Origin: Macrostomum lignano
Lineage: Eukaryota
Direction: 5' to 3'
Assembly: GCA_002269645.1 (NCBI GenBank)
Contig: NIVC01000829.1
Location: forward strand, 1 to 64,000
Length of the DNA stretch: 64,000 bases
The position numbers were made by a program, and so were the translations under genes. Under the pieces are notes generated by a model. The model was not told the origin of the DNA, did not search any database, and was given only the letters and a program-made list of their open reading frames with translations. This document shows positions 4,416 through 64,000 of the stretch, in pieces (positions within the stretch are counted from its first letter, which is position 1; the number at the start of each line of letters is the position of its first letter).

Positions 4416-4603
4416 GTGAGTATTCGGGCATGTAATTATGGCTTTAATTTATTTATTTTTAGTGAGCAATAGCCATTCATATAGGAAAATGTAATCAAAA
4501 AGTACTCCAAAGGGTTTCTATGATATGGACGAGAAGCAGCGTTAATCTGTGAGGTCAAGGCCCTTGAAAAGTTTTGTCTTTTTGAGTCACTGCAATGTTT
4601 TAC

Positions 4604-10511: not shown

Positions 10512-12035
10512 ATGTCTTCTGCCAAAAAAGCAACGTCAGGAAAGCAGCAAGGCGACAACAAGCAGCAGCACGATGTTTGCAGTCTGCCTAACTGTGGCCA
10601 AGACGCTGCTGGTCAGGGCAGCCACTGGGACGGGCCCTTGTGCGCCGCCCATCTGAAGCGAGACGCCGACCGATTCCGAGAGAGCTACTACTCTTATCGT
10701 CAGGCGAACATCGATGGTGCAATGCGCCGCGTTGCCGAGCAGATGGACTTGACGCGCGGCGCTTTGTTCGAGCTGACCAGCGACCGAGCCAATGCGTCAG
10801 ACATGTTTGAAGAGATTCTCGAGATTGTCCAGCGCTGCCGCAGTACCGTCATTGGCAGGCTGGACGCCAAGATCGACAGCATGGACGCCAGTCTGAAGTC
10901 GTTGCACTTCTTTGAAAAGCTTCGAGCAGATATCAACGGGACTGAAATGTCTGGCGATCTTGTTAAAAGTTTCCAGTTGAGCAAGAAGATGCAACTCGCA
11001 CTTGAAGATGCTCCCATTTCCGATGCTTGGACTGATCCAGTTGACAGCAGCGTTGAACTGGTCCAGAAGCTGCTGCAGGAGACAAAGACTCGAGCTGCAA
11101 TTGCCGAGGATGCAGACGGGGCAGCAATGCGATCTTTGCTGGAGTCAGCTGTGCCAACTGCCAAGGTTCTTCTTACAAACTACATCCAATTCGTTTTCAA
11201 CTGCAATCGTACGGATGGATTTTTTTACTCCGCTCAGCTGGTTTCCAAGACGCAACAGAATGGCTTTCAGGCTTTGCCAAGCTCCTGCGTACTTGCAGTA
11301 GGTAACTATGGTGCGAACTGGCATATCGCTTTCTATAGCAACGAACTCGTGGTACTTAGCCAAAGAAATCAGCCATCGAACAATGTTGTATTAGTGTCTG
11401 CAGCTCTTGTGAATCACCAGCAACAAATCTATATGCTTGGTAATAACAATTCTTTGATTGTGACGGACCTAGCTGGTACACAGCTTCGAACTATTGACAA
11501 TGTCCAGTTTCAAGCTGAAATGCCGATCATAGTCAACGATATGGAGAAGCTGTACATTCTCGGTGATGGCTGCATAAACTGCCTGTCGCTGGACACTTGC
11601 GAACTTCAGGATAGCATGAAACTCTCGAAAGACACTGCGAATGTTCGTCATATGACAGTTTCTGGTCGTAGTTTAATACTGGCCACCCAGTCAGCAGTGT
11701 ATCGAATGAGTCTCGGCACGAAAAGATGCGTAAAAGTCTGGCAGAGCAATAGTCAAAATGTGCTGTGCGTTGTAGACATTGGATCTGGATTTCTGGCTGC
11801 CTGCGAAAATAATGGCAGCGTTGCACTTCTTAGCAGCAACAGACAACTGATTAAAGTGATTGATCTGGTGCCACTAGGCGTAAACTATCTCAAGACGTGT
11901 GCTAACTGTGGTGTATCGTATGTTCTGCAGTCAATTAGCTCCTGTGGCGCCAGCCGAGAATCTTCGAGCTCCTTTCTGCTGATATGCAGCTTGTCGTGCA
12001 ACCATCGCGTTTTAGTGCGAGTGTCGATCTGCTAG
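10512..12035 (+). CDS. TRIM-like protein, type A (divergent): C3H zinc-finger-like motif, coiled coil, probable beta-propeller; 507 aa, intronless
   Basis: CSLPNC-x15-CAAH motif; heptad-rich segment; repeated beta-strand units (IYMLG..SLIVTDLAGTQL, KLYIL, LILAT..AVYR); alignable along its length to the paralogues at 18335, 25636, 33260, 42270. Fold assignment is inference. Confidence 0.8.
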   Translation: MSSAKKATSGKQQGDNKQQHDVCSLPNCGQDAAGQGSHWDGPLCAAHLKRDADRFRESYYSYRQANIDGAMRRVAEQMDLTRGALFELTSDRANASDMFEEILEIVQRCRSTVIGRLDAKIDSMDASLKSLHFFEKLRADINGTEMSGDLVKSFQLSKKMQLALEDAPISDAWTDPVDSSVELVQKLLQETKTRAAIAEDADGAAMRSLLESAVPTAKVLLTNYIQFVFNCNRTDGFFYSAQLVSKTQQNGFQALPSSCVLAVGNYGANWHIAFYSNELVVLSQRNQPSNNVVLVSAALVNHQQQIYMLGNNNSLIVTDLAGTQLRTIDNVQFQAEMPIIVNDMEKLYILGDGCINCLSLDTCELQDSMKLSKDTANVRHMTVSGRSLILATQSAVYRMSLGTKRCVKVWQSNSQNVLCVVDIGSGFLAACENNGSVALLSSNRQLIKVIDLVPLGVNYLKTCANCGVSYVLQSISSCGASRESSSSFLLICSLSCNHRVLVRVSIC

Positions 12036-14897: not shown

Positions 14898-14994
14898 ATG
14901 GCAAATAAAAGCGTCGATGCAGAATCCGATGCACAGACGTGCACCATGACGCGTTGCACAGAGCCTTCATCCGTTCTCGGCAAATTTTGGAGCG
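14898..14994 (+). pseudogene. 5' fragment (about 32 codons) of a type B TRIM-like paralogue, truncated by the TE block
   Basis: MANKSVDAESDAQTCTMTRCTEPSSVLGKFWS, then homology ends abruptly; intact upstream acceptor TTTTCTCTTTTCAG. Confidence 0.85.
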
Positions 14995-18334: not shown

Positions 18335-19846
18335 ATGGCAACTGAAAGTGTCGATGCAGAATCCCATGCACAGACGTGCACCATGACGCGTTGCACGGAA
18401 CCCTCGTCCGGTCTCGGCAAATTCTGGAGCGGGCTACTCTGCGATCGACATCTCGTTAAAGATGAGAAGATTTTTACAAAGAGATACGCCGATATAAAAT
18501 CAAAAAACACTGAGGTATTGTCGAAGACAGATGAACTGTTAAAAGCAAACAGGGTTGCTCTGTTTGATCTGACCAGCGACAGAGCTGAGGCCGCTGACCT
18601 GTTTGACGCAATATTTCAGAGATTGCAGCAGTGCAGAGAAAATGTGATGAGCAGATTGGACTCTAAAATAGACAATGTGGAGCAGAACTTGAGAGCTCTC
18701 GGCTTCATAGAGAAACTTTCGGTCGAGATCGGCGAGGAGGAAGCCAAAGGTGTTTCAACTAAAGGATTCAGGCTGCATCAAGCGGTCCAGATCTCGCTTG
18801 AAGATGCCCCGATATCAGAAGAGTTTGTCGATCCGGTAGACAACAGTGTGCAGCAGGTACTGAGATTGCAACAGGCTTTTGAGACTATGGCCGCTGAGGC
18901 CGAGAATCCTGAAGTCCAGGACAAGAATCTAAAAGCTAGAATTAATTCTGCCAGGCCCAAAGTAAATGTGTCTAATTTACCCAATATTTCGTATGAATAT
19001 ATTCTCGCTGCTGTTTGTAACAATACTGCTGGATACTATTTCTCATCGCAAGCAGTCTCGAAGACAAACCAAAACGGATTTCAAGCTCTCCCTAGCGGAA
19101 GCACTTTTTGTGTGGCTAAAGCTTCGCAGTATTGGTTTTTCATGGTCTGTAATTCAGACATGCAAATAATCAGTCAGTGGAACGTTGGTAGCAACGGAGT
19201 GCAGCTAGCTTCAGGTACTCTTGTCGATCATCTTCAGCAGATATTTCTTCTTGGAACCAATCGGTCCCTAATTCAGACTAACCTGAGTGGCGCCCAGTTG
19301 CGAAGTGTCCATAATGTGCAGTTCCAACCTCCACTACGCCTCACTCATGACATGAAGAAGCTGTACATTCTTAGCAACGGTTGCGTGAACTGCCTCTCTC
19401 TGGGGTCGCTTGTGCTGCAGCAGAGCTTGAAGCTGCCTGATCATTTGAAGGACGCTCGGAGTGTAGCAGTTTCAAGACGCGGCTTAATACTGTCCACCCC
19501 ATCAGCTGTACATCGATTAAACATCTGCACCGGTGGTGTGATAAAGCTGATGGACAGTCAAAACTTTTGTGTCGCTGTCATTGACTCTGGATTGATTGCA
19601 GTGTTCGAAACTAATGGAAATGCTGTTTTTGTGAGCAGCTCAGGGCAGCGGTTGAAAAGTTTCAGTCTGACAAACTCGGGTTTCAACTACGTAAACTATT
19701 GCCAAACTTGTCGACAGAACAATTACAATACCACCTGGCAATCTATAGTCTGCAGCGGTGCCTACTTAGATTCCACAAGCTGTTTCGTTCTTCTTGTGCA
19801 CATGTCATGCGGACACCGACTCCTTGGGCGCGTTTCTATTGGTTAA
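18335..19846 (+). CDS. TRIM-like protein, type B paralogue B1 (503 aa, intronless)
   Basis: CTMTRC-x15-CDRH; coiled coil; propeller-like C-terminus; CQTC..SCGH tail; acceptor TTTCTCTTTTTAG 2 nt before the ATG. Confidence 0.85.
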   Translation: MATESVDAESHAQTCTMTRCTEPSSGLGKFWSGLLCDRHLVKDEKIFTKRYADIKSKNTEVLSKTDELLKANRVALFDLTSDRAEAADLFDAIFQRLQQCRENVMSRLDSKIDNVEQNLRALGFIEKLSVEIGEEEAKGVSTKGFRLHQAVQISLEDAPISEEFVDPVDNSVQQVLRLQQAFETMAAEAENPEVQDKNLKARINSARPKVNVSNLPNISYEYILAAVCNNTAGYYFSSQAVSKTNQNGFQALPSGSTFCVAKASQYWFFMVCNSDMQIISQWNVGSNGVQLASGTLVDHLQQIFLLGTNRSLIQTNLSGAQLRSVHNVQFQPPLRLTHDMKKLYILSNGCVNCLSLGSLVLQQSLKLPDHLKDARSVAVSRRGLILSTPSAVHRLNICTGGVIKLMDSQNFCVAVIDSGLIAVFETNGNAVFVSSSGQRLKSFSLTNSGFNYVNYCQTCRQNNYNTTWQSIVCSGAYLDSTSCFVLLVHMSCGHRLLGRVSIG

Positions 19847-20860: not shown

Positions 20861-21073
20861 CTCAGGGCAGCAGTTAAAAGTTTCACTCTGTCAAACTCTG
20901 GTTTTAAATTGAATCACAATAGTCAAGCTGGTGCACAGTGTAGTACGAATACTGTCGCCTACTATATTATCGGCTGCGGAGCCTATTTAAATTCCAGAAG
21001 CTGTTTCGTTGTTATTGTGCAGATGCCATTTTGTTACCGACTCCTTGGGCGCGTTTCTGTTGGTGAATATTGA
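20861..21073 (+). pseudogene. 3'-end relic of a diverged TRIM-like paralogue
   Basis: SGQQLKS(F)TLSNSGF..YIIGCGAYLNSRSCFVVIVQMPFCYRLLGRVSVG matches the family C-terminus; one frameshift in this copy. Confidence 0.8.
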
Positions 21074-23091
21074 GCTATTACCTCGTTTCAGATACTGCTA
21101 CTCATAGCAAGATTAATGACAATGTTTAAAATCTATCGGAAAGAAAGAGCATAATTTAAGTTTATATGAACAGACAGTTTTTGTTTGTTGGCTGTTTTAA
21201 TATAGTATTATCCATAGCTGTGGTTAAGCGGTTTCAACCTTCGACTTTTTTTGACGTGCCCATCGATCATAAATAATCTGAAGTTCAGTGTATTTTACTA
21301 AAAACTCAAAACTCAAAGCAGTTTTTCCGTATTTTTTTGTACGAGTATTTTCTGAAAAGCAGTCACTAATATCCACCGGAGATGTCACTCACTGTATTGC
21401 TTTGGCTGGTTTTTAGTGATAGTATGGTCTTGAAAGTAAAATATGAAGTTATTTCTGTATCTGCAAGTCTACTAAAGTTTATGTTTGCTTAGTCAAATTT
21501 ATGTTTATGCAAAAAATTTATAAAATAAGTTAAAAATCTTCCGTTTTATTTGCACTTTAGAGTTTGCTTGTTTGCAGTTCAGTTTGATTTTTGACGAGCT
21601 GTACATCTAAGTTATTACTTTTTCTTGGAATTAGTTTGTATTGTTGTGGCCCCTTCAGTATTCTGTCTAAGAAAATTTGCGTGATAAGTTAGTTGGCGTT
21701 TAATTGTGGTGCTATTGATTCTAAACCATATTTCCCGCTGTGGCCAAGCTATCGTATGATATAGAACATGCCGTGATATACTTTCAAAACAGTGATTTGA
21801 GTAATTTGAATTGCTCTAAATAAGAATTAGAATTTATTTTCAGTCAACGTTAAAAAAGTAAAAAAATACTTTTTTCAATGCTGAATTCCAATTCTTATTT
21901 TCCATCAACCCGATTTTTATTGCTTTTTATGTACTCGAATCATTGCCACATAGCATATGGGCCGTTTTCGTCTATTTCCATGTGTTTTTTATATTTACAT
22001 ATGGGAGGTCTAACTAAGTACTGGAATGAAAGAAAAAATAAAATGATGCAATTCGTGATTTGCTACTTGTACAATTTGTTGAGCAAACCTGATGTTTCTA
22101 AGAGGAGACCTGATTGACATGTTCGCGTTTCTAATCAATTGGTCCGACCAGCTACCGATTCTAGTAGCTTTAAGGCTTCGTTTTGGGTTCTTTAATGTCC
22201 TAAATTGACGTTATATCCCCATTTTATGCACTTTATTCTCTAAGACATCAAGGGAGAGACCGCGACGGGATCTGGGCGATTTTAGGCAACTGTTCCGAGC
22301 AGTTATGCACTCCAGTCGGTTTGGTGCGGGACCTAGCTTTGGGTTCCATTGTAGAGCTTTAAGGTGACATCCTTGTAGAAATTATTGGAATTTAAAATTA
22401 GAACTAAGATTAGCTAAGCTTTCTCTTTAATGTCTGTTTTGATTTTACTTACCTCCCTCAGCTTGGTTTTACACAAGCTTGTGGTCTTTTGCTTAGATTT
22501 ATGGTGAAATTGTATATCCAGAATAGCCATTATTTACCTGTGATTTCAGTAATAGTAGTTTTGTGCACCTATTTGTGTGCCTTACCAATTGCAAAATTTA
22601 ACTTCTGATCAATTTTATGTTTTAGCAACATCGCGTGCAATTTTATATATTCGTTGTACTTACTTTATTTTTCCTGTCAATTTCTTGACAGTTTGATTGG
22701 ATTGATTTGTTTTCAATTTTGACATTTTTGTATACTGAGCCTTTTAGGCTTCTGCTTTACTTCTCTTGAATGCTACAAAAGTAGAACTTGTTTTGTTTCG
22801 ATTTTCTAGCGAATCGAGTGATTCCAAAACAGAGCAATGAGAAAAAAATATATTTTTGTATTCGTTCTTTTGATTGTACATAGCATTGTATATAGACTTC
22901 ATCATTTGGCCACTAAGCCTTCTTAACACGCAGTTTCTCTACAGTTTTTTGGTACAGCTAATGAATTTCTTAATGAGAGACTCTGCAATGTCGGTAACAA
23001 GCACATCAGCTTATCAAAATGAATAATACTATAGTTAATTATTTTTAGGTGTTGTAGAGCATTTATTTTTATGTAGTTAATGCGCTACACG

Positions 23092-23412
23092 TGTAGTTCT
23101 CCACCTAGCCAGTCTTGCTTGATTTTAGTGCACTGTGTCGGCCCCAACCCACCCTTGTAGCCGTCTGGCTGCTTAGTCACCCCCGCCCCCAAATAGTCAC
23201 CCATTTTTATACCTTCTGCTAATGTAGTCTAGTTGTGGTGGTGTTACTTCCGTCTCGCGTGTGATTGGATGCCCAGGGTTAAGTCATCTTTCTCTAATTG
23301 ATTGGCTGGGCCTTTGTTGTGTCTACTTAACTCCCGGTTTTCTTTTCCCAAGTTCTTTCTCCCCTCCCCCATGCGCCCGGCCTGGCAGCTCTATTTATTG
23401 AGATCCCTTACA
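23092..23412 (-). promoter_or_regulatory. Promoter/LTR-like module facing leftwards (duplicate at 40652-40972)
   Basis: On the minus strand: CCAAT (23301-23305), CCAAT (23264-23268), ETS CGGAAGT (23246-23252), TATAAAAA (23204-23211); bounded by TGTAA...CTACA; no TSD found. Confidence 0.35.
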
Positions 23413-24439
23413 GGCCACTTTCTCGGCCCTCTCCGGACTGCTTTCCTGTCCTCCCGTTTGGGCTTAAACTGTGTTTAATTGGCGGTCCCCAGCTGCCCCT
23501 TTTTCGATCGCGTACACCTGCTCTGTTCGTCAGCGCCCCCATCGTAATCTGCCAATATACGAGCGACTATTCTCCGCTGCTGAAAAACGCCACGTAGGCC
23601 GCTGTCCCCCGCGTGTTTTTGGATTAGACTGTTTTAGGATCTAGCTGGGATTTGGAGAGACAATCGGGAATCACTTGAGTAGTAGGTTGCGTTGACTGCA
23701 GCATTAGGGTTTGTACACAAGCCCGGATTAGTGGGTATTTTTTTCTGGGATTCCCCCAAATTTAAAATTTAGATTACCCATAAACTGGGGTGCCGAAAAG
23801 CATGAAAACCTTTGAATTTGACTCAGCTTCAACTTCAGAAAGGCTTTCAAATAGTTGCTCGCTATAGTGTCATCTCAGCTAGCAAAATCGATAGCTGTTA
23901 GCTGCTCTATTTTGCTCTTTTTGCCCTAAGCCTTTTATGAGTTTTGCTTGGAGTTGACTGTTGGCTTAGACAATAAAAATAGCTAATTTTGTCAACACCT
24001 GTCTACTTTAGAGCTGTTTTTACTAATAAACTCTCAAGACGTATACGCTCCTAGGCTCGGTTTCTCAATAAAAATGTCAAAATATATGTATTTTGTGACA
24101 CCCGAATCGGATAAGTTTAAAACTCAACGGTTGCCTTGGTGTGTAGTGAGGCGTGCCCTTTAGTAGCACCCTTTAACTTAGTGCTTTGTGTGTGCGCGTG
24201 GGGTTGGCGCGGTTGTGTCCTTTCTACCCCCTTGTGTGCAGCGCCCCCATGCCTACTGAGGGTTTTATGCCTTTGTTTGAGCTGTTCCTCTTGCGTTTCC
24301 GTTCTTGCTCGATTACTATCAATTTTTGCTTTGCCAACCGGGTTTTTGTGGCGTGGCATTAATTCAGCTCCAACTTATACTGCTATTCGAAGCCTTTCAC
24401 TGAGGGCAACAGCGTCCCGGGTAGCAGCTAAGCAGCCTC

Positions 24440-25330: not shown

Positions 25331-25635
25331 TTGATAAATTAGAACACGAAAGTAGCTAGTCACCTGATTTTCAGTAATGCTGCAATGCATTTTAACTAAT
25401 AACTTTTATGACTCAAAATTAGGGCATCATATTTAAACGCCTAAGCTTCAACAATTTCTCGAATGTGTCTATGCATTAACCGTATTCTACTATCGCCATT
25501 TGGATTAAAAATATGTTGACTAGTTTTTTATAAAATCAGGGCCATAACACAGATTCAGCGGCGCCTAGAATTCATTATTTATACATATTTAGTATTGCTC
25601 GTATATTTACTAGCTAATATTTTCTCTTTTCAGCT

Positions 25636-27219
25636 ATGCAAACTGAAAGCGTCGATGCAGATACCGACGCACGGACGTGCACCATGACGCATTGCACGGA
25701 GCCGTCGTCAGGTCTTGGCAAATTCTGGAGCGGGCTACTCTGCGAGCGGCATCTCGGTAAAGATGAAAAGATTTTCGAGGAGAGATACGCCGATATAAAA
25801 TCAAAGAACACTGAACCATTATCAAAGACGAACGAGCTCTTAAAAGCAAACCGGGGAGCTCTGTTTGAACTGACCAGCGACAGAGCTGAGGCCGCTGACC
25901 TGTTTGACGCAATCTTTCAGAGATTGCAGCAGTGCAGAGAAAATGTGATGAGCAGATTGGACTCTAAAATAGACCATGTGGAGCAGAATTTGAGAGCTCT
26001 CAGTTTCATAGAAAAACTTTCTGTCGAGATCGGCGAGGAGGAAGCCAAAGGTGTTTCAACTAAAGGATTCAGGCTGCATCAAGAGGTCCAGATCTCTCTT
26101 GAGGATGCCCCGATATCAGAAGAGTTTGTCGATCCGGTAGACAACAGCGTGCACCAGGTACTGAGATTGCAACAGGCTGTTGAAACTGTGGCCGTCGAGG
26201 CTGAGGATCCTGAGGATAAGAAGCGAGAAAGTAGATTTAAGTCTGCTGTGCCCAATGTTAACGTGGCGCTTAATTTGGCCAACAATGTACGCTATCGTAT
26301 GGCTGCTGTTTGCTGCAATACTGCTGGATACTATTTCTCAGCTCAAGCAGTCACGAAGACAAACCAAAACGGATTTCAAGCTCTCCCTAGCGGAAGCACT
26401 TTTTGTGTGGCTAATAATAATAGTTTCCAGCATTGGTTTTTCTCGGTTTTTAATTCAGACATGCAAATAATCAGTCAGTGGAACGTTAATAACGACGGTG
26501 TGCAGCTAGCTGCAGGTACTCTTGTAGATCACCTTCAGCAGATATTTCTTCTTGGAACCAATCAGTCCCTATTTGTGACTGACCTGACTGGCACCCAGTT
26601 GCGAAGTGTCCAGAATGTGCAGTGCCAAGCTGCAATAAGCCTCACTTATGACAATGAGAAGCTGTACATTCTTAGCTACGGTTGTGTGAACTGCCTCTCT
26701 CTGGAGTCGCTTGAGCTGCAGCAGAGCTTGAAGCTGCCTGATCATGTGAAGGACGCTCACAGTGTAACAGCTTCAGGACGCAGCTTAATTCTGGCTACTC
26801 CATCAGCTGTGCATCGATTAAACATCGGCACCGGTGGTGTGAAGAAGCTGATGGACAGTCAAAACTTTGGTGTTGCTGTCATTGACTCTAGATTGATTGC
26901 AGTGTGCGAAACAAATGGAAATGCTGTATTTGTAAGCAGCTCAGGGCAGCGGTTGAGAAGCTTGAGTCTGTCAACCTCTGGTTTCAACTACGTGAGCTAT
27001 TGCCAAACTTGTCGATCTAGCTATATCTGCCCAAATTGTATGAGACAGAGTGCTGACAATCTGCAACAAAAATGCCGATTGTGTGGGTTCAATGTCGCTG
27101 GTAGTACCTGCGAATCTATCATCTGCGGTGATGGTTACTTTGGTTCCACAAGTTGTTTCGTTATTCTTGCGTACATGTCATGCGATCACCAACTTTTTGG
27201 CCGCGTTTCTATTGGTTAA
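25636..27219 (+). CDS. TRIM-like protein, type B paralogue B2 (527 aa) with an extra C-terminal CxxC..CxxC insert
   Basis: Full ORF; family motifs; 24-aa net insertion containing CPNC and CRLC; acceptor TTTTCTCTTTTCAG 2 nt before the ATG. Confidence 0.85.
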   Translation: MQTESVDADTDARTCTMTHCTEPSSGLGKFWSGLLCERHLGKDEKIFEERYADIKSKNTEPLSKTNELLKANRGALFELTSDRAEAADLFDAIFQRLQQCRENVMSRLDSKIDHVEQNLRALSFIEKLSVEIGEEEAKGVSTKGFRLHQEVQISLEDAPISEEFVDPVDNSVHQVLRLQQAVETVAVEAEDPEDKKRESRFKSAVPNVNVALNLANNVRYRMAAVCCNTAGYYFSAQAVTKTNQNGFQALPSGSTFCVANNNSFQHWFFSVFNSDMQIISQWNVNNDGVQLAAGTLVDHLQQIFLLGTNQSLFVTDLTGTQLRSVQNVQCQAAISLTYDNEKLYILSYGCVNCLSLESLELQQSLKLPDHVKDAHSVTASGRSLILATPSAVHRLNIGTGGVKKLMDSQNFGVAVIDSRLIAVCETNGNAVFVSSSGQRLRSLSLSTSGFNYVSYCQTCRSSYICPNCMRQSADNLQQKCRLCGFNVAGSTCESIICGDGYFGSTSCFVILAYMSCDHQLFGRVSIG

Positions 27220-30768: not shown

Positions 30769-31208
30769 ATGGCAACAAAACGTAAATCAAGCGCAACAAG
30801 CGACGAGCAGGATCGACCAGCAAGCCGACTGTGCAGCCTCAGCCACTGCCAGAGCCCGGCTTCGGGCCGCGGACACTATTGGGCCGGCCTCTGCGCTGAG
30901 CATCTGGAGAGTGACAAACATCAGTTTAAAAGTCGGTTCGCCAGCATTAAGAAGGAAACTAATTCGATACTCGCTAGTGTTTTGCAGCTCACAAACCGCG
31001 CTAAAGCTGCTTAATTCGAGCTGACGACTGACCGGGCTGAGGCGGCTGACCTGTTTGATGATGTCCTTGAAAGAGTGAATGAGTGCAGGGAGAAAGTGCT
31101 TGCTTGGTAGATTAGACTCGAATATTGCAGATATGGAGCAGATCCAGAGGTCTCTCAGCTGTGCAGAGAAACTTTCGGTTGATATCAGAAGTCAGTCAGC
31201 CCTACTAG
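30769..31208 (+). pseudogene. Type C mini-gene C1 (finger + coiled coil only), disrupted
   Basis: MATKRKSS..CSLSHC..LCAEH; premature TAA at 31012-31014 and a 4-bp duplication (CTTG) near 31100. Confidence 0.85.
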
Positions 31209-33259: not shown

Positions 33260-34753
33260 ATGGCAACTGAAAGCGTCGATGCAGAATCCGATGCACAGAC
33301 GTGCACCATGACGCATTGCACAGAGCCTTCGTCAGGTCTTGGAACATACTGGAACGGGCAACTCTGCAAGCGACATCTCGCTAAAGATGAAAAGATTTTC
33401 GCAAAGAGATACGCCGATATTAAATCAGAGAACACTGAGGTATTATCGAAAACAGATAAACTCTTGAAAGCAAACCAGGGAGCTCTGTTTGAACTGACCA
33501 GCGACAAAGCTGAGGCCGCTGATCTGTTTGACGCCATCTTTCAGAGATTGCAGCAGTGCAGAGAAAATGTGATGAGCAGATTGGACTCCAAAATAGACAA
33601 TGTGGAACGAAACTTGAAAGCTCTCAGTTTCATAGAGAAACTTTCGGTCGAGATCGGCGAGGAGGAAGCCAAAGGTGTTTCAACTAAAGGATTCAGGCTG
33701 CATCAAGAGGTCCAGATCTCGCTTGAGGATGTCCCGATATCAGAAGAGTTTGTCGATCCGGTAGACAACAGTGTGCACCAGGTACTGAGATTGCAACAAG
33801 CTGTTAGGACTTTTGCAGATGAGGCAGAGGATCCAGAGGATAAGAAACTAAAAGCTAGACTTGACTCTGCCGTGCCCACTGTAAAAATTGCGCCTAAATT
33901 GGCCAACCGTTCCTATATTCTCGCTGCTGTTTGCACCAATACTGCTGGATACTATTTCTCAGCTCAAGCAGTCACGAAGACAAAGCAAAACGGATTTGAA
34001 GCTCTCCCTAGCAGAAGCACTTTTTGTGTGGGTAATAATTCGCAGGATTGTTTTTTCAAGGTCTATAATTCAGACATGCAAATTATCAGCCAGTGGAACG
34101 TTGGTAACAACGGAGTGCAGTTAGCTTCAGGCACACTTGTTGATCATCTTCAGCAGATATTTCTTCTTGGAACCAATCAGTCCCTAATTGTGACTGACCT
34201 GACTGGCACCCAGTTGCAAAGTGTCCAGAATGTGCAGTGCCAAGCTCCAATAAGTCTCACTCATGACATGGAGAAGCTGTACATTCTCAGCAACGGTTGC
34301 GTAAACTGTCTCTCTCTGGAGTCGCTTGAGCTGCAGCAGAGCTTGACGCTGCCCGATCATGTGAAGGACGCTCGGAGTGTAGCAGTTTCAGGACGCGGCT
34401 TAATACTGTCCACCCCATCAGCTGTACACCGATTAAACATCAGCACCGGTGGTGTGAAGAAGCTGATGGACAGTCAGAACTTTTGTGTCGCTGTCATTGA
34501 CTCTGGATTGATTGCAGTGTTCGAAACTAATGGAAATGCTGTTATTGTGAGCAGCTCAGGGCAGCGGTTGAAAAGTTTCAGTCTGACAAACTCGGGTTTC
34601 AACTACGTAAACTATTGCCAAACTTGTCGACAGGGCAATTACAATACCACCTGCCAATCTATAATCTGCAGCGGTGCCTACCTAGATTCCACAAGCTGTT
34701 TCGTTCTTCTTGTGCACAGGTCATGCAGTCACCGACTCCTTTGGCGCCAGTAA
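33260..34753 (+). CDS. TRIM-like protein, type B paralogue B3 (497 aa); last 4 codons displaced by a hAT insertion
   Basis: Full ORF ending WRQ*, with the stop supplied by the TIR (CAGTAA); the original end GTTTCTATTGGTTAA (VSIG*) is at 37355-37369. Confidence 0.85.
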   Translation: MATESVDAESDAQTCTMTHCTEPSSGLGTYWNGQLCKRHLAKDEKIFAKRYADIKSENTEVLSKTDKLLKANQGALFELTSDKAEAADLFDAIFQRLQQCRENVMSRLDSKIDNVERNLKALSFIEKLSVEIGEEEAKGVSTKGFRLHQEVQISLEDVPISEEFVDPVDNSVHQVLRLQQAVRTFADEAEDPEDKKLKARLDSAVPTVKIAPKLANRSYILAAVCTNTAGYYFSAQAVTKTKQNGFEALPSRSTFCVGNNSQDCFFKVYNSDMQIISQWNVGNNGVQLASGTLVDHLQQIFLLGTNQSLIVTDLTGTQLQSVQNVQCQAPISLTHDMEKLYILSNGCVNCLSLESLELQQSLTLPDHVKDARSVAVSGRGLILSTPSAVHRLNISTGGVKKLMDSQNFCVAVIDSGLIAVFETNGNAVIVSSSGQRLKSFSLTNSGFNYVNYCQTCRQGNYNTTCQSIICSGAYLDSTSCFVLLVHRSCSHRLLWRQ

Positions 34754-41655: not shown

Positions 41656-41659
41656 TCTG

Positions 41660-42269: not shown

Positions 42270-43781
42270 ATGGAAACTGAAAGCGTCGATGCAGATACCG
42301 ATGCACGGACGTGCACCATGACGCATTGCACGGAGCCGTCGTCAGGTCTTGGCAAATTCTGGAGCGGGCAACTCTGCGAGCGGCATCTCGGTAAAGATGA
42401 AAAGATTTTCGAGGAGAGATACGCCGATATAAAATCAAAGAACACTGAACCATTAGCGAAGACGAACGAACTCCTAAAAGCAAACCGAGGAGCTCTGTTT
42501 GAACTGACCAGCGACAGAGCTGAGGCAGCTGATCTGTTTGACGCAATATTTCAGAGATTGCTGCAGTGCAGAGAAAATGTGATGAGCAGATTGGACTCTA
42601 AAATAGACAATGTGGAGCAGAACTTGAGAGCTCTCGGCTTCATAGAGAAACTTTCGGTCGAGATCGGCGAGGAGGAAGCCAAAGGTGTTTCAACTAAAGG
42701 ATTCAGGCTGCATCAAGAGGTCCAGATCTCGCTTGAGGATGCCCCGATATCAGAAGAGTTTGTCGATCCGGTAGACAACAGCGTGCACCAGGTACTGAGA
42801 TTGCAACAGGCTGTTGAGACTTTTGCAGATGAGGCTGAGGATCCTGACGGTGAGAAACTAAAAGCTAGACTTGAGTCTGCCGTGCCCACTGTTAATGTGG
42901 CTCCTAATTTGGACAACTACTGTTCCTATATTCTCGCTGCTGTTTGCACCAATACTGCTGGATACTATTTCTCAGCTCAAGCAGTCACGAAGACAAACCA
43001 AAACGGATTTCAAGCTCTCCCTAGCGGAAGCACTTTTTGTGTGGCTAATGATTGTCAGTATTGGTTTTTCATGGTCTATAATTCAGACATGCAAATTATC
43101 AGCCAGTGGAACGTTGGTAACAACGGAGTGCAGTTAGCTTCAGGCACACTTGTTGATCATCTTCAGCAGATATTTCTTCTTGGAACCAATCAGTCCCTAT
43201 TTGTGACTGACCTGACTGGCACCCAGTTGCGAAGTGTCCAGAATGTGCAGTGCGAAGCTGCAATAAGCCTCACTCATGACATGGAGAAGCTGTACATTCT
43301 TAGCTACGGTTGTGTGAACTGCCTCTCTCTGGAGTCGCTTGAGCTGCAGCAGAGCTTGACGCTGCCCGATAATGTGAAGGACGCTCACAGTGTAACAGCT
43401 TCAGGACGCAGCTTAATTCTGGCTACTCCATCAGCTGTACATCGGTTAAACATCGGCACCGGTGGTGGGAAGAAGCTGATGGACAGTCAGAACTTTTGTG
43501 TCGCTGTCATTGACTCTAGATTGATTGCAGTGTTCGAAACTAATGGAAATGCTGTTTTTGTAAGCAGCTCAGGGCAGCGGTTGAGAAGTTTCAGTCTGAC
43601 AAACTCGGGTTTCAACTACGTAAACTATTGCCAAACTTGTCGACAGGGCAATTACAATACCACCTGCCAATCTATAATCTGCAGCGGTGCCTACTTAGAT
43701 TCCACAAGCTGTTTTGTTCTTCTTGTGCACATGTCATGCGGAGACCAACTCCTTGGATGCGTTTCTTTTGGTTATGATTAA
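42270..43781 (+). CDS. TRIM-like protein, type B paralogue B4 (503 aa)
   Basis: Full ORF; family motifs; acceptor TTTTCTCTTTTCAG 2 nt before the ATG. Confidence 0.85.
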   Translation: METESVDADTDARTCTMTHCTEPSSGLGKFWSGQLCERHLGKDEKIFEERYADIKSKNTEPLAKTNELLKANRGALFELTSDRAEAADLFDAIFQRLLQCRENVMSRLDSKIDNVEQNLRALGFIEKLSVEIGEEEAKGVSTKGFRLHQEVQISLEDAPISEEFVDPVDNSVHQVLRLQQAVETFADEAEDPDGEKLKARLESAVPTVNVAPNLDNYCSYILAAVCTNTAGYYFSAQAVTKTNQNGFQALPSGSTFCVANDCQYWFFMVYNSDMQIISQWNVGNNGVQLASGTLVDHLQQIFLLGTNQSLFVTDLTGTQLRSVQNVQCEAAISLTHDMEKLYILSYGCVNCLSLESLELQQSLTLPDNVKDAHSVTASGRSLILATPSAVHRLNIGTGGGKKLMDSQNFCVAVIDSRLIAVFETNGNAVFVSSSGQRLRSFSLTNSGFNYVNYCQTCRQGNYNTTCQSIICSGAYLDSTSCFVLLVHMSCGDQLLGCVSFGYD

Positions 43782-46477: not shown

Positions 46478-46723
46478 TATTTAATGTCTCTGCGTTTACT
46501 TTTTAATTTTTTTAAGCAGACTGAACCAGTTCTTCGTTTTGCTTAAATTAATTCAATTATTTTATGTTTGCTTTCTGGTTAAGAACTGTGAATGTGTAGG
46601 AAAATTATGAAGTGACAAGTACCGACAATTTTTTGGAAAATCTGGTTGAAAGTTTGTTTTTTGATTGACACGACAATATCATGGACTGCTTTTTTGAAAA
46701 CTGGGCCCATATATGCTTTAACG

Positions 46724-47161
46724 ATGGCAACAAAACGTAAATCAAGCGCAACAAGCGACGAGCAGGATCGACCAGCAAGCCGACTGTGCAGCCTCAGCCA
46801 CTGCCAGAGCCCGGCTTCGGGCCGCGGACACTATTGGGCCGGGCCTCTCTGCGCTGAGCATCTCGAGAGTGACAAAGAGCAGTTTAAAAGTCGGTTCGCC
46901 AGCATTAAGAATGAAACCGATTCGATACTCGCTGGTGCTTCGCAGCTCACCAACCGCGCTAAAGCTGCTCAATTCGAGCTGACGACTGACCGGGCTGAGA
47001 CGGCTGACCTGTTTGAGGCTGTCATTGCAAGAGTGAATGAGTGCAGGGAGAAAGTGCTTGGTAGATTAGACTCGAATATTGCAGATATGGAGCAGATCCA
47101 GAGGTCTCTCAGCTGTGTAGAGAAACTTTCGGTTGATGTCAAAAGTCAGTCAGCCCACTAG
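46724..47161 (+). CDS. Type C mini-gene C2: finger + coiled coil only, 145 aa, intact ORF
   Basis: ATG at 46724 (codon 27 of the listed ORF); CSLSHC-x15-CAEH; ends EKLSVDVKSQSAH*; no AG acceptor immediately upstream, so expression is uncertain. Confidence 0.55.
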   Translation: MATKRKSSATSDEQDRPASRLCSLSHCQSPASGRGHYWAGPLCAEHLESDKEQFKSRFASIKNETDSILAGASQLTNRAKAAQFELTTDRAETADLFEAVIARVNECREKVLGRLDSNIADMEQIQRSLSCVEKLSVDVKSQSAH

Positions 47162-49128: not shown

Positions 49129-50640
49129 ATGACAACCGATAGCGTCGATGCAGAATCCGATGCACAGACGTGCACCATGACGCATTGCACAGAGCCTTCG
49201 TCAGGTCTTGGAATATACTAGAGCGGGCAACTCTGCGAGCGGCATCTCGCTAAAGATGAGAAGATTTTCGCAAAGAAATACGCCGATGTTAAATCAGAGA
49301 ACACTGAGGTATTATCGAAGACAGATGAACTGTTAAAAGCAAACAGGGGAGCTCTGTTTGAACTGACCAGCGACAGAGCTGAGGCCGCTGATCTGTTTGA
49401 CGCAATCTTTCAGAGATTGCAGCAGTGCAGAGAAAATGTGATGAGCAGATTGGACTCCAAAATAGACAATGTGGAGCAGAACTTGAGAGCTCTCAGTTTC
49501 ATAGAAAAACTCGCGATCGAGATCGGCGAGGAGGAAGCCAAAGGTGTTTCAACTAAAGGATTCAGGCTGCATCAAGAGGTCCAGATCTCGCTTGAGGATG
49601 CCACGATATCAGAAGAGTTTCTCGATCCGGTGGACAGCAGTGTGCAGCAGGTACTGAGATTGCAACAAGCTGTTGAGACTTTTGCAGATGAGGCTGAGGA
49701 TCCTGAGGATAAGAAACGAGAAAGTAGACTTAAGTCTGCCGTGCCCACTGTTAAGGTGGCGCCTATTTTGGCCTGCAATGTAATCTATGTTTTCGCTGCT
49801 GTTTGCTGCAACACTACTGGATACTATTTCTCAGCTCTAGCAGTCAGGAAGACAAACCAAAACGGATTTCAAGCTCTCCCTAGCGGAAGCACTTTTTGTG
49901 TGGGTAACCATAATAGTTCGTAGTATTGGTTTTTCATGGTCTGTAATTCAGACATGCAAATAATCAGTCAGTGGAACGTTGGTAACAACGGAGTGCAGCT
50001 AGCTTCAGGCACATTTGTAGATCGTCTTCAGCAGATATTTCTTCTTGGAACCAATCAGTCCCTAATTGTGACTGACCTGACTGGCACCCAGTTGCGAAGT
50101 GTCCAGAATGTGCAGTGCCAAGCTCCAATAAGCCTCACTCATGACATGGAGAAGCTGTACATTCTCAGCAACGGTTGCGTGAACTGCCTCTCTCTGGAGT
50201 CGCTTGAGCTGCAGCAGAGCTTGACGCTGCCCGATAATGTGAAGGACGCTCGCAGTGTAACAGCTTCAGGACGCAGCTTAATTCTGGCTACTCCATCAGC
50301 TGTACATCGGTTAAACATCGGCACCGGTGGTGGGAAGAAGCTGATGGACAGTCAGAACTTTGTTGTCGCTGTCATTGACTCTGGATTGATTGCAGTGTTC
50401 GAAACTAATGGAAATGCTGTTTTTGTAAGCAGCTCAGGGCAGCGGTTGAAAAGTTTCAGTCTGACAAACTCGGGTTTCAACTACGTAAACTATTGCCAAA
50501 CTTGTCGACAGGGCAATTACAATACCACCTGCCAATCTATAATCTGCAGCGGTGCCTACTTAGATTCCACAAGCTGTTTCGTTCTTCTTGTGCACTTGTC
50601 ATGCGGACACCGATTCCTTGGGCGCATTTCTATTGGTTAA
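49129..50640 (+). pseudogene. Type B paralogue B5, nonsense pseudogene
   Basis: TAG at 49219-49221 (W codon) and 49921-49923 (Q codon); upstream acceptor AG changed to TG. Confidence 0.9.
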
Positions 50641-55948: not shown

Positions 55949-57460
55949 ATGACAACCGATAGCGTCGATGCAGAATCCGATGCACAGACGTGCACCATGA
56001 CGCATTGCACAGAGCCTTCGTCAGGTCTTGGAATATACTAGAGCGGGCAACTCTGCGAGCGGCATCTCGCTAAAGATGAGAAGATTTTCGCAAAGAAATA
56101 CGCCGATGTTAAATCAGAGAACACTGAGGTATTATCGAAGACAGATGAACTGTTAAAAGCAAACAGGGGAGCTCTGTTTGAACTGACCAGCGACAGAGCT
56201 GAGGCCGCTGATCTGTTTGACGCAATCTTTCAGAGATTGCAGCAGTGCAGAGAAAATGTGATGAGCAGATTGGACTCCAAAATAGACAATGTGGAGCAGA
56301 ACTTGAGAGCTCTCAGTTTCATAGAAAAACTCGCGATCGAGATCGGCGAGGAGGAAGCCAAAGGTGTTTCAACTAAAGGATTCAGGCTGCATCAAGAGGT
56401 CCAGATCTCGCTTGAGGATGCCACGATATCAGAAGAGTTTCTCGATCCGGTGGACAGCAGTGTGCAGCAGGTACTGAGATTGCAACAAGCTGTTGAGACT
56501 TTTGCAGATGAGGCTGAGGATCCTGAGGATAAGAAACGAGAAAGTAGACTTAAGTCTGCCGTGCCCACTGTTAAGGTGGCGCCTATTTTGGCCTGCAATG
56601 TAATCTATGTTTTCGCTGCTGTTTGCTGCAACACTACTGGATACTATTTCTCAGCTCTAGCAGTCAGGAAGACAAACCAAAACGGATTTCAAGCTCTCCC
56701 TAGCGGAAGCACTTTTTGTGTGGGTAACCATAATAGTTCGTAGTATTGGTTTTTCATGGTCTGTAATTCAGACATGCAAATAATCAGTCAGTGGAACGTT
56801 GGTAACAACGGAGTGCAGCTAGCTTCAGGCACATTTGTAGATCGTCTTCAGCAGATATTTCTTCTTGGAACCAATCAGTCCCTAATTGTGACTGACCTGA
56901 CTGGCACCCAGTTGCGAAGTGTCCAGAATGTGCAGTGCCAAGCTCCAATAAGCCTCACTCATGACATGGAGAAGCTGTACATTCTCAGCAACGGTTGCGT
57001 GAACTGCCTCTCTCTGGAGTCGCTTGAGCTGCAGCAGAGCTTGACGCTGCCCGATAATGTGAAGGACGCTCGCAGTGTAACAGCTTCAGGACGCAGCTTA
57101 ATTCTGGCTACTCCATCAGCTGTACATCGGTTAAACATCGGCACCGGTGGTGGGAAGAAGCTGATGGACAGTCAGAACTTTGTTGTCGCTGTCATTGACT
57201 CTGGATTGATTGCAGTGTTCGAAACTAATGGAAATGCTGTTTTTGTAAGCAGCTCAGGGCAGCGGTTGAAAAGTTTCAGTCTGACAAACTCGGGTTTCAA
57301 CTACGTAAACTATTGCCAAACTTGTCGACAGGGCAATTACAATACCACCTGCCAATCTATAATCTGCAGCGGTGCCTACTTAGATTCCACAAGCTGTTTC
57401 GTTCTTCTTGTGCACTTGTCATGCGGACACCGATTCCTTGGGCGCATTTCTATTGGTTAA
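55949..57460 (+). pseudogene. Type B paralogue B6, nonsense pseudogene (copy of B5)
   Basis: TAG at 56039-56041 and 56741-56743; acceptor lost. Confidence 0.9.
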
Positions 57461-62855: not shown

Positions 62856-64000
62856 ATGACAACCGATAGCGTCGATGCAGAATCCGATGCACAGACGTGC
62901 ACCATGACACATTGCACAGAGCCTTCGTCAGGTCTTGGAATATACTGGAGGGGGCAACTCTGCGAGCGACATCTCGCTAAAGATGAGAAGATTTTCGCAA
63001 AGAAAAACGCCGATGTTAAATCAGAGAACACTGAGGTATTATCGAAGACAGATGAACTGTTGAAAGCAAACAGGGTTGCTCTGTTTGAACTGACCAGCGA
63101 CAGAGCTGAGGCCGCTGACCTGTTTGACGCAATATTTCAGAGATTGCAGCAGTGCAGAGAAAATGTGATGAGCAGATTGGACTCTAAAATAGACAATGTG
63201 GAGCAGAATTTGAGAGCCCTCAGTTTCATAGAAAAGCTTTCTGTCGAGATCGGCGAGGAGGAAGCCAAAGGTGTTTCAACTAAAGGATTCAGGCTGCATC
63301 AAGAGGTCCAGATCTCGCTTGAAGATGCCCCGATATCAGAAGAGTTTGTCGATCCGGTAGACAACAGTGTGCACCAGGTACTGAGATTGCAACAAGCTGT
63401 TAGGACTTTTGCAGATGAGGCAGAGGATCCTGAGGATAAGAAACGAGAAAGTAGACTTAAGTCTGCCGTGCCCACTGTAAAAATGGCGCCTAATTTGTTA
63501 AACAATTTTTTGTTTATTCTCGCTGCTGTTTGCAGCAATACTGCTGGATACTATTTCTCAGCTCAAGCAGTCACGAAGACAAACCAAAACGGATTTCAAG
63601 CTCTACCTAGCGGAAGCACTTTTTGTGTGGCTAATAATTCGCAGTATTGGTTTTTCATGGTCTGTAATTCAGACATGCAAATAATCAGTCAGTGGAACCT
63701 TGGGAACAACGGAGTGCAGTTAGCTTCAGGCACACTTGTTGATCATCTTCAGCAGATATTTCTTCTTGGAACCAATCAGTTCCTAATTGTGACTGACCTG
63801 ACTGGCACCCAGTTGCGAAGTGTCCAGAATGTGCAGTGCCAAGCTCCAATAAGCCTCACTCATGACATGGAGAAGCTGTACATTCTCAGCAACGGTTGCG
63901 TGAACTGCCTCTCTCTGGAGTCACTTGAGCTGCAGCAGAGCTTGACGCTGCCTGATCATGTGAAGGACGCTCGCAGTGTAACAGCTTCCAGACACAGCTT
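62856..64000 (+). CDS. TRIM-like protein, type B paralogue B7, partial (open to the window end)
   Basis: Hand translation from ATG 62856 (MTTDSVDAES..CTMTHC-x15-CERH...) has no stop to 64000; not in the ORF track because no stop is reached; upstream acceptor lost. Confidence 0.75.
   Translation, partial: MTTDSVDAESDAQTCTMTHCTEPSSGLGIYWRGQLCERHLAKDEKIFAKKNADVKSENTEVLSKTDELLKANRVALFELTSDRAEAADLFDAIFQRLQQCRENVMSRLDSKIDNVEQNLRALSFIEKLSVEIGEEEAKGVSTKGFRLHQEVQISLEDAPISEEFVDPVDNSVHQVLRLQQAVRTFADEAEDPEDKKRESRLKSAVPTVKMAPNLLNNFLFILAAVCSNTAGYYFSAQAVTKTNQNGFQALPSGSTFCVANNSQYWFFMVCNSDMQIISQWNLGNNGVQLASGTLVDHLQQIFLLGTNQFLIVTDLTGTQLRSVQNVQCQAPISLTHDMEKLYILSNGCVNCLSLESLELQQSLTLPDHVKDARSVTASRHS

Follow-up and report, generated by a model that had tools for sequence, protein, structure and literature searches.

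In the flatworm Macrostomum lignano, the members of a tandem gene array evolve in concert: most of their coding sequence is reshuffled and made uniform by gene conversion. A patch of 12 codons, HV1, is left out of this homogenisation. HV1 evolves at about the neutral rate, and every paralog therefore has its own version. Either selection or mere tolerance may keep these versions different; selection for diversity in a hairpin that sets specificity is rated slightly more probable than relaxed constraint.

The gene array

The analysed window is the first 64 kb of M. lignano contig NIVC01000829.1. It carries a tandem array whose members, A0 and B1 to B7, each consist of a single exon and have a length of about 500 aa. 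The window also has related open reading frames and fragments.

10512..12035, + strand: A0, a divergent paralog of 507 aa and the first gene of the array, with 40% identity to B2 (ORF, tblastn)
14898..14993, + strand: fragment of a B-type N-terminus, 32 codons (tblastn, P0002 sequence)
18335..19846, + strand: B1, intact, 503 aa; HV1 at 18971-19006, HV2 at 19115-19135
25636..27219, + strand: B2, intact, 527 aa (ORF); the copy to which the sequence-only reading pointed
33260..34753, + strand: B3, intact, 497 aa; HV1 at 33890-33922, HV2 at 34031-34051
42270..43781, + strand: B4, intact, 503 aa; HV1 at 42900-42935, HV2 at 43044-43064
46646..47161, + strand: ORF of 171 codons with zinc knuckle and coiled coil only (ORF list, tblastn)
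49129..50640, + strand: B5, pseudogene; HV1 at 49759-49794
55949..57460, + strand: B6, identical to B5, both stops included, within a 6.82-kb tandem duplication
62856..64000, + strand: B7, clipped by the end of the window; HV1 at 63486-63521, HV2 at 63630-63650 (tblastn)

The number of independent B copies in the window is six and not seven, as B5 and B6 are a single sequence in exact duplicate (6,156 identical bases at an offset of 6,820). B5 has premature stops at codon 31 (49219) and codon 265 (49921, within HV2), and pseudogenes make up two of the seven B copies in the window. B7 is full-length in L002:9689-11197. A0 differs at two of 507 amino acids from the annotated BOX15_Mlig017959g1 on another contig. 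The N-terminal fragment at 14898..14993 serves as an upstream exon in P0002, the annotated product of B1. The 171-codon ORF belongs to a different paralog type, with 45% identity to B2. It recurs at 53466-53981, leaves fragments at 30823-31201 and 60438-60806, and its type is annotated as 145-aa genes in L001 and L002. No mention of Mlig017959, Mlig022369, Mlig017407, Mlig034540 or Mlig022866 was found among 8.3 million papers or in the supplements of three M. lignano papers.

Protein architecture and family identity

A coiled coil followed by a putative beta-propeller had been proposed from the sequence, and the AF2 models and Foldseek agree with this order. The parts of B2 are located as follows.

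25678..25752, + strand: zinc knuckle C-x4-C-x15-C-x2-H (C15, C20, C36, H39; alignment; pLDDT 81-92)
25744..26241, + strand: coiled-coil region (AF2 DSSP)
25894-26082: nearly invariant block ADLFDAIFQRL...KGFRLHQ, within the coiled-coil region
26251..27216, + strand: beta-propeller, aa 206-527, NHL-related (AF2 model, profile, Foldseek)
26266..26301, + strand: HV1, ALNLANNVRYRM, aa 211-222 (alignment, AF2 model)
26410..26436, + strand: HV2, ANNNSFQHW, aa 259-267 (alignment, AF2 model)

Among 24 aligned family members the three cysteines of the knuckle are present in all 24 and H39 in at least 90%, with family-wide conservation limited to C-x(2-4)-C-x(13-16)-C-x2-H. In the AF2 model of B2 (pLDDT 78), a continuous helix of about 100 residues spans aa 37-138 and is followed by helices at 141-157, 170-189 and 195-202 (pLDDT 74-92). 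This pattern of one long helix and shorter return helices resembles the coiled coil and L2 linker of TRIM proteins such as TRIM25 and TRIM5. The last blade of the propeller is broken by a Cys-rich tail, and B2 alone has a Cys-rich insert of 24 aa inside 27025-27102. Foldseek searches with both AF2 models returned only propellers, with generic WD40-type, 7-bladed neighbours, and singled out no specific family.

Searches for homologues gave six matches in 5.8 billion clusters and 37 in 1.84 billion representatives. Membership was checked for 20 of the clusters, and nearly all of these consist of M. lignano proteins, the exceptions being two metagenome clusters. By these matches the genes form an orphan, almost M. 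lignano-only family, and a family of about 37 representative clusters without a Pfam model is now annotated. The family profile matches NHL domains, with Thin/TRIM32 at 2.8e-20, TRIM71 at 5e-19, TRIM2/3 at 1e-11 and Brat at about 1e-8. The matches range from 2.8e-20 to 1.7e-8; their best stretches fall on the last blades, where distant members contribute most of the signal. B2 by itself has no Pfam NHL match. In a Pfam scan, neither B2 and A0 nor any of ten relatives matched a family above threshold, and a PDB search with a single sequence gave chance matches only. The same scan contained weak hints of Utp8/CNH propellers and one sub-threshold NHL repeat in P0006.

RING is absent from B2 and A0 in the Pfam scan, and just 14 residues precede the first cysteine. 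A distant M. lignano relative, P0038, has a sub-threshold RING match. The relatives P0032, P0036 and P0021 are called B-box or TRIM2 by their sources, and the UniProt name of P0032 and P0036 is 'B box-type domain-containing'. The B-box has no Pfam match, and the knuckle profile searched against the PDB reaches the TRIM63 B-box at a non-significant E of 3.6. By the profile matches, the array members are RING-less proteins distantly related to the TRIM-NHL proteins.

The HV1 hairpin

Six HV1 and six HV2 strings had been quoted from the copies, and all twelve are exact in the sequence; in B2 both segments lie inside 26200-26460, as given. The further claim that the two segments differ in every copy holds for HV1, whereas HV2 is unexceptional in substitutions. 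Measured by summed pairwise amino-acid differences, HV1 is the most variable 12-column window, at 7.17. Not one of 10,000 rounds of column shuffling reached this value, and the 99.9% quantile of the maximum was 5.68 (p<1e-4). HV1 has a pN of 0.41 versus 0.03-0.05 in its flanks, and a pS of 0.36. The coiled-coil block was rightly described as nearly invariant, with a pN of 0.03. The loops had also been called discrete, which needs correction: HV1 is the peak of a variable zone of 35 codons (linker plus HV1, columns 190-224) and is not isolated. The Cys-rich C-terminal tail, missing from the sequence-only reading, is another variable zone.

The model places HV1 at the junction of coiled coil and propeller, directly before the conserved AAVCxNTxGY motif, where it is predicted to form a hairpin loop (211-218) and the start of a strand (219-226). 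The predicted strand has an alternating pattern, with residues 219, 221 and 227 variable and residues 220, 224 and 226 conserved. The corresponding segment of 17 distant family members is an L-x-G-x-P-x-x-[LVI] motif of average conservation. HV1 is, on the predicted fold, a structured segment and no floppy linker. Across the whole propeller, variation is not enriched in loops (0.158 in loops versus 0.152 in strands). HV1 and HV2 may lie on opposite faces of the propeller, as judged from DSSP and the register of the NHL motif. By blade topology this placement is suggested because HV1 comes before a first strand and HV2 comes after a strand of the A type (LPxGxTFCVA).

The DNA of HV1 is non-repetitive, and its changes are mostly base substitutions across 36 nt. 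A compensated frameshift was considered as the origin of HV1 and rejected, since the length of every indel is divisible by 3 and the difference between copies is already there in the nucleotides. The pattern could also be an artefact of misaligned indels, of a collapsed or chimeric polyploid assembly, or of noncoding sequence read as protein. B1 requires two 3-nt indels to be aligned through HV1, B5 and B6 are an exact duplicate, and the Mlig_3_7 assembly is redundant: its duplicated blocks with 95% identity or more add up to 180 Mb (PMC5730564). An artefact is nevertheless very improbable. Sharp conserved anchors lie on either side of HV1 in the nucleotide alignment. B1 was included in both the window test and the codon models, and the HV1 excess is also present in pairwise nucleotide distances among the other copies, where it is smaller than in distances with B1. 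Seven distinct copies on two contigs each retain an open frame of about 500 codons, and their omega is below 1. Gene models are annotated for B1, B7, C1 and A0, and the annotation behind them is transcriptome-guided (PMC5730564).

Concerted evolution and gene conversion

Recombination in the array is evident from the PHI statistic (0.297, with a mean of 0.471 under permutation; p<=5e-4), from five mutually discordant segment trees and from mosaic distances. B4 and C3, for example, differ at 1 of 66 nt in the linker and at 35 of 240 in the N-terminal part. Runs of 15-30 codons have a pS of 0, and the 36 codons just downstream of HV1 are near-identical across copies (pS 0.05). The least homogenised part of the gene is N-terminal, where pS rises to 0.46. 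The invariance of the coiled coil (region pN 0.03, pS 0.13, omega 0.23) is partly due to gene conversion and not to constraint alone, because dS is low, the PHI test is significant and the distances are mosaic. Purifying selection acts on the coiled coil (omega about 0.2) and on most of the propeller (about 0.5). Noncoding flanks form classes, and flanks of different classes become unalignable past about 100 bp. They were therefore unusable as a neutral yardstick and show just that the coding sequence is more homogenised than the DNA around it.

Active conversion raises the idea of programmed cassette diversification, in which HV1 would be copied from silent donors in the style of antigenic variation or pseudogene-templated systems. 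A search of the window and three loci (137 kb of the two arrays) found no match to any HV1 36-mer with up to 8 mismatches outside the homologous positions, and so no donor of any HV1. This explanation is scarcely credible.

Selection at HV1

The codon models were our own implementation, with NG86 as the sole check (M0 omega 0.54 versus about 0.49). On a single tree the likelihood ratio tests were strong, at 37.3 for M1a/M2a, 39.5 for M7/M8 and 36.7 for M8a/M8 (p about 1e-9), and the flagged columns 216, 219, 220, 222 and 228 are at or beside HV1. These single-tree tests are unreliable because recombination in the array is demonstrated, and they are not accepted at face value. With segment-specific trees the statistic was 6.8 (p 0.033), with sites 216 and 220. 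The omega of HV1 is 3.6-4.8 if its synonymous rate is shared with the homogenised flanks. Given its own rate, which is 3-4x background, HV1 has an omega of 1.1-1.4, not different from 1 (p 0.4-0.8), and the own-rate model fits better (LRT 6-10). The dN/dS check that had been proposed for the variable segments came out mixed. For HV1 the ratio is far over background, but it exceeds 1 only under the flank-shared synonymous rate.

Relaxed constraint together with a conversion barrier would explain this without adaptation, and it has a substantial chance of being correct, distinctly short of even. HV1 would be a structurally tolerant, neutral hairpin whose mismatch density, after its divergence, blocked heteroduplex extension, so that conversion tracts stop at its edges and the flanks alone are homogenised. 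Concerted evolution would in that case produce the hypervariable loop on its invariant scaffold as a side effect, and the contrast would say nothing about adaptation. The own-rate omega, which is not above 1, fits this account, and the pS of HV1 falls among those of the least homogenised parts of the gene. Tracts do end beside HV1: C3 and B4, near-equal in their linkers, differ at 11 of 36 positions in HV1. Constraint on the whole protein is loose (M0 omega 0.54), 43% of its sites fall into the class with omega=1, and pseudogenes are frequent. Against a neutral hairpin, the segment equivalent to HV1 is a conserved motif elsewhere in the family, and the buried/exposed periodicity that the B copies keep in the predicted strand suggests that HV1 is not free of constraint. 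A mean omega of about 1.2 over 12 codons, conserved ones included, implies omega>1 at the variable ones, and a partitioned M2a still yields a class with omega>1 (p 0.03). The low pS of the 36 codons downstream would also require tracts to stop repeatedly at the same edge.

The HV2 loop

In B2, HV2 is predicted to be a loop (261-265) between strands 254-260 and 266-272. The sequence-only reading noted indels here, and they are present: they are in-frame, of 3 and 6 nt, and fall in an AAT/AAC run (GCT AAT AAT AAT ...). Sequence of this type is prone to replication slippage. By substitutions, 119 of 522 equal-width windows score above HV2, and the site models never flagged it. HV2 is an ordinary loop, permissive family-wide, with its length drifting by slippage in the Asn-codon run.

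A local mutational hot spot, with intrinsically unstable DNA (slippage, error-prone repair) at both segments, would account for whole-codon indels in HV2 and for the rate multiplier of HV1. It is improbable for the pair. The substitutions of HV1 are spread over non-repetitive DNA, and B5 equals B6 exactly. B5 and C2, its counterpart on the second contig, have 22 differences over about 1,510 positions but none in the 36 of HV1, which argues against ongoing hypermutation. The hot-spot explanation is adequate for HV2 only.

A possible role in recognition

The preferred explanation is that of a lineage-specific array under concerted evolution, in which the diversity of HV1 is kept for paralog-specific recognition; we consider it nearly as probable as not. 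Each gene encodes an N-terminal CCCH zinc knuckle, then a coiled coil about 100 residues long that is followed by return helices, and an NHL-related beta-propeller with a Cys-rich tail at its end. Conversion homogenises this scaffold and spares the 12-codon patch, whose predicted hairpin joins the coiled-coil linker to the first conserved strand of the propeller. HV1 may set which ligand, RNA or protein, is recognised by the propeller of each paralog. Converted, uniform HV1 variants would be selected against, as in other recognition families. The own-rate omega of 1.1-1.4 counts against selection, because neutral evolution of a tolerated patch predicts exactly that.

If HV1 is a selected specificity determinant, the array would represent an invertebrate TRIM-type recognition family on an NHL propeller, not on SPRY. 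RNAi is available in M. lignano. Transgenesis is established in this animal (PMC5730564). With the two tools the target of the family could therefore be found experimentally. If HV1 is merely tolerated, the array is a clean small-scale illustration of a known trap in site-model testing: gene conversion can create a pattern of hypervariable loop and invariant scaffold, and it can inflate a site-model p from 0.03 to 1e-9.

Comparison with known systems

The array proteins share with the TRIM-NHL proteins (TRIM2, TRIM3, TRIM32/Thin, TRIM71/LIN-41, Brat, Mei-P26 and NHL-2) the order of zinc finger, long coiled coil and C-terminal beta-propeller. The family profile matches their NHL domains; of the distant M. 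lignano relatives, P0038 has the sub-threshold RING match and others are labelled B-box or TRIM2. Unlike the TRIM-NHL proteins, the array proteins lack RING and have a four-ligand CCCH knuckle with no recognisable B-box. The Cys-rich tail interrupts the last blade here, and the structural neighbours are 7-bladed WD40 propellers. TRIM-NHL genes are conserved single-copy regulators, whereas the array is a fast-turnover tandem family confined almost to one flatworm.

A homogenised scaffold with a divergent short patch, and very high local dN against low flanking dS, are also features of other multigene families that evolve in concert, for instance in the peptide-binding codons of MHC and the solvent-exposed LRR residues of plant NLRs. 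In those systems omega>1 and ligand contact are demonstrated, whereas here omega is about 1 at the patch's own rate.

TRIM5alpha and TRIM22, and the finTRIM/btr genes of fish, have a C-terminal recognition domain with variable loops and evolve by birth and death, with pseudogenes. The array shares this birth-and-death turnover and also resembles them as a set of multi-copy TRIM-type genes with a conserved coiled coil and short, copy-specific, indel-prone loops. The analogy to the SPRY loops of TRIM5, drawn from the sequence at the outset, is partly upheld: kinship to TRIM is indicated by the NHL profile, and the model puts HV1 and HV2 in hairpin loops, but the domain is an NHL-type propeller. 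Pfam found no SPRY in B2 or A0, and the variable segments sit in the beta-propeller in place of B30.2/PRY-SPRY. Positive selection is not robust here, and proteins without RING would not be expected to have intrinsic E3 activity. By analogy, the array could be a flatworm recognition system of the TRIM5/finTRIM kind, built of RING-less, TRIM-NHL-derived dimers whose HV1 is held diverse against conversion, with an RNA or protein target for each paralog, such as transposon, viral or gamete-derived ligands. We regard this fuller reading as unlikely. If true, it would mean that a variable-loop recognition family was invented independently on an NHL propeller scaffold in a lophotrochozoan.

Gene array and its copies

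The window is eukaryotic DNA and corresponds to positions 1-64000 of Macrostomum lignano contig NIVC01000829.1 (assembly GCA_002269645.1). Its gene array consists of head-to-tail, single-exon ORFs, all on the + strand. A search of the literature found no mention of the B-array genes.

10512-12035, + strand, A0, 40% identity to B2
18335-19846, + strand, B1, ORF
25636-27219, + strand, B2, ORF
33260-34753, + strand, B3, ORF
42270-43781, + strand, B4, ORF
49129-50640, + strand, B5, premature stops at codons 31 and 265
55949-57460, + strand, B6, an exact copy of B5, stops included
62856 onward, + strand, B7, truncated by the window end and full in L002 (NIVC01000829.1, 53168-74364; first base = window 53168)

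B5 and B6 are identical pseudogenes because of a 6.82-kb tandem duplication, whose whole unit (44215-54670 versus 51042-61476) matches at 98.5% and contains an exact core of 6,156 bases (46536-52691 versus 53356-59511, offset 6,820). The duplication could be a very recent event or an assembly artefact. A related, shorter array on contig NIVC01000254.1 (loci L001 and L003) comprises A0', a degraded B1 counterpart from which the HV1 region is absent, and then C1, C2 and C3. C2 (L001:26227-27741) is near-identical to B5 and is intact at both of its stop codons (31 and 265). The published M. lignano assembly is redundant because line DV1 carries additional large chromosomes (PMC5730564), and the second contig is therefore read as a homeologous or allelic copy of the array. 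A 4-kb intergenic block recurs at 96% identity downstream of B1 (20103-24083) and upstream of B4 (37657-41656), so array units had differing boundaries. The longer B3-B4 spacing results from an inserted hAT-type transposase remnant, two adjoining ORFs at 35105-36592 (Dimer_Tnp_hAT, E 2e-6).

Upstream of the array lie a minisatellite (2755-3846; 38 copies of a 29-bp unit, 92% matches) and the ORFs of a multi-exon gene (about 4020-8836). On the second contig the counterpart of this gene (L001:1-3938) has an annotated AKAP-17A RNA-binding domain; the gene marks a boundary common to the two arrays. About 2.3 kb before its B gene, each repeat unit has a further ORF, with a knuckle and coiled coil and no propeller. 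Those at 46646-47161 and 53466-53981 are of a different paralog type, with 45% identity to B2; fragments occur at 30823-31201 and 60438-60806, and equivalents on L001 and L002 are annotated as 145-aa genes. Such a product, with a coiled coil and no propeller, might pair with full-length copies.

Macrostomum lignano is a trans-splicing species. In B1-B4, a polypyrimidine tract and AG (ttttcag/ct) end two bases before the ATG (25625-25635 in B2), which is consistent with a splice or trans-splice acceptor. The AG is lost in B5/B6 (ctg) and B7 (atg), and the annotation has the B7 product, P0003, begin at an internal Met. At 14898-14993, 3.3 kb ahead of B1, there is an isolated 32-codon copy of a B-type N-terminus, which the annotated protein P0002 has spliced in as an additional 5' exon.

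Two variable segments of different kinds

26266-26301, + strand, HV1 of B2, aa 211-222
26410-26436, + strand, HV2 of B2, aa 259-267

Every HV1 and HV2 string listed in the sequence-only reading was found in the sequence. Among the eight distinct copies compared, no other 12-column window in the entire protein varies as much as HV1, whose pairwise amino-acid differences sum to 7.17. With columns shuffled, the maximum has a 99.9% quantile of 5.68, and none of 10,000 shuffles came up to the HV1 sum. In the nucleotide alignment HV1 is a near-saturated patch of about 36 nt with sharply conserved anchors on either side.

Divergence by region (Nei-Gojobori, 21 pairs)
HV1: pN 0.41, pS 0.36
Coiled coil: pN 0.03, pS 0.13
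36 codons separating HV1 from HV2: pN 0.05, pS 0.05
Remaining propeller: pN 0.05, pS 0.11

HV2 had been singled out alongside HV1, and it does vary by indels, mainly of 3 and 6 nt within an AAT/AAC run; its substitutions are unremarkable, with 119 of 522 windows scoring higher. No HV2 site was flagged in any site model. In the alignment of the whole family, inserts at this position range from 0 to about 30 residues, and nowhere is conservation lower (0.125, against an average of 0.29). HV2 is a loop that is permissive across the family, in slippage-prone sequence.

Two further variable zones had not been listed: columns 190-212, the linker that leads directly into HV1, and the C-terminal tail, which is rich in Cys. 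The tail, for which the model predicts disorder at pLDDT about 40, holds a 24-residue insert found only in B2 (27025-27102; aa 464-489). With its flanks the insert has three CxxC pairs (CQTC...CPNC...CRLC) and looks like an additional zinc-binding module.

Predicted structure

An AlphaFold2 model built on a 24-sequence alignment (mean pLDDT 77.9) predicts a small, zinc-knuckle-like N-terminus, a single unbroken helix at aa 37-138 followed by three shorter helices to aa 202, and an all-beta domain at aa 206-526 with a disordered Cys-rich break at 457-494. Foldseek searches with the models returned only beta-propellers. The coiled coil and the propeller proposed from sequence are both confirmed. 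In the better model, strand 206-210 leads through loop 211-218 into strand 219-226, so that HV1 makes up the loop of a beta-hairpin and the opening residues of its second strand. That strand runs into AAVCxNTxGY, the family's most conserved propeller motif, in which C226, T229 and G231 are nearly invariant. Along strand 219-227, variable positions 219, 221 and 227 are interleaved with conserved positions 220, 224 and 226, an alternation that looks like a real strand with an exposed and a buried face. In 17 distant members the equivalent segment retains the motif L-x-G-x-P-x-x-[LVI] and is of average conservation; family-wide, therefore, it is not an unconstrained linker. The hypervariability of HV1 is specific to the B clade.

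HV2 is modelled as loop 261-265, which connects strand 254-260 to strand 266-272. Going by motif register, HV1 comes before an A-type strand and HV2 after one, which together with blade topology would place them on opposite propeller faces.

Homogenisation and tests for selection at HV1

The array recombines. The PHI statistic is 0.297, versus 0.471 in permutations (p<=5e-4), trees from five gene segments are discordant, and distances form a mosaic, with B4 and C3 separated by 1 of 66 nt in the linker and by 35 of 240 in the N-terminal part. Noncoding flanks fall into separate classes, unalignable past about 100 bp, so the coding sequence is far more uniform than its surroundings. Runs of 15-35 codons without synonymous differences among seven copies (columns 130-145 and 300-335; about 26023-26070 and 26527-26634 in B2) are probably recent conversion tracts. 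Within columns 300-335 nonsynonymous differences persist (pN 0.06-0.08), and local omega is far above 1.

Goldman-Yang-type codon models were run in our own Python implementation, which gave an M0 omega of 0.54 versus about 0.49 by Nei-Gojobori. With one neighbour-joining tree of eight copies, M2a was strongly preferred over M1a (LRT 37.3, p 8e-9; omega 6.2 for 2.4% of sites), as was M8 over M7 (LRT 39.5) and M8a (LRT 36.7). Posteriors exceeded 0.9 at column 200, a linker codon, at columns 216, 219 and 220 in HV1, and at column 228, next to the conserved Cys on its downstream side. Once each segment had its own tree and branch lengths, the M1a/M2a LRT dropped to 6.8 (p 0.033), and the sites were 216 and 220. 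The most telling test is the fixed partition. A dN/dS significantly above 1 appears at HV1 when it shares the surrounding synonymous rate (omega 3.6-4.8, p 1e-7 to 1e-15). Giving HV1 its own rate fits better (LRT 5.9-9.7; rate 3-4x) and puts its omega at 1.1-1.4, statistically indistinguishable from 1 (p 0.4-0.8). HV1 pS (0.36) is inside the range of the gene's least homogenised parts (up to 0.46). HV1 thus evolves at close to the neutral rate, its age equals that of the most ancient parts of the array, and the adjacent codons are homogenised and under purifying selection. The most solid outcome is a caution: owing to concerted evolution, the p-value of the site-model test overstated significance by about eight orders of magnitude.

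We see close to an even chance, though slightly below it, that selection retains HV1 diversity. Copies losing their own HV1 through conversion would be selected against, and HV1 would serve as a specificity element of the propeller. The constraint on this segment elsewhere in the family, the strand periodicity kept within the B copies and the still marginally significant partitioned site test argue for retention. A mean omega of about 1.2 across 12 HV1 codons, several of them conserved, also implies omega>1 at others. It is a real possibility, if somewhat under an even chance, that HV1 is merely tolerated and that its own divergence blocks heteroduplex extension, so that conversion tracts stop there. 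The omega of about 1 at its own rate, the loose constraint on the protein (the omega=1 class takes up 43% of its sites) and the frequent pseudogenes point to tolerance. Hypermutation is an unlikely source of the pattern, as B5 and C2 have identical HV1 although the genes differ at 22 sites; no donor cassette for any HV1 was found in 137 kb of the two arrays, and an artefact is unlikely.

Relation to TRIM-NHL proteins

B2 alone matched no Pfam family and no sequence relative in the PDB. The family is small and lineage-restricted, with 6 matches among 5.8 billion clusters and 37 in a profile search of 1.84 billion representatives. Members were checked for 20 clusters, and nearly all of these clusters are hypothetical proteins of M. 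lignano; two differ, a JGI metagenome cluster, with one member source-labelled TRIM2/3/71, and an unnamed ENA cluster with strong NHL repeats. The farthest relatives include P0038, a database protein with a RING-like N-terminus, and others named B-box-type or TRIM2 in UniProt. In the zinc knuckle, C-x(2-4)-C-x(13-16)-C-x2-H, the three Cys are invariant family-wide and the His (H39 in B2) is present in at least 90% of 24 members. The knuckle profile had no significant B-box match in the PDB (TRIM63 B-box, E 3.6).

NHL propellers matched by the 24-member family profile among solved structures
Thin/TRIM32: E 2.8e-20
TRIM71: E 5e-19
TRIM2/3: E about 1e-11
Brat: E about 1e-8

The B proteins are RING-less and TRIM-NHL-derived. 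The resemblance to TRIM proteins suggested from sequence goes beyond analogy for the scaffold, but the variable domain is not SPRY. TRIM-NHL proteins are the closest known system: the B genes share the coiled coil and differ in having no RING, and their propeller is matched to NHL by the family profile but not by the single B2 sequence. Any likeness in working to TRIM5/finTRIM-type expansions would be by analogy only.
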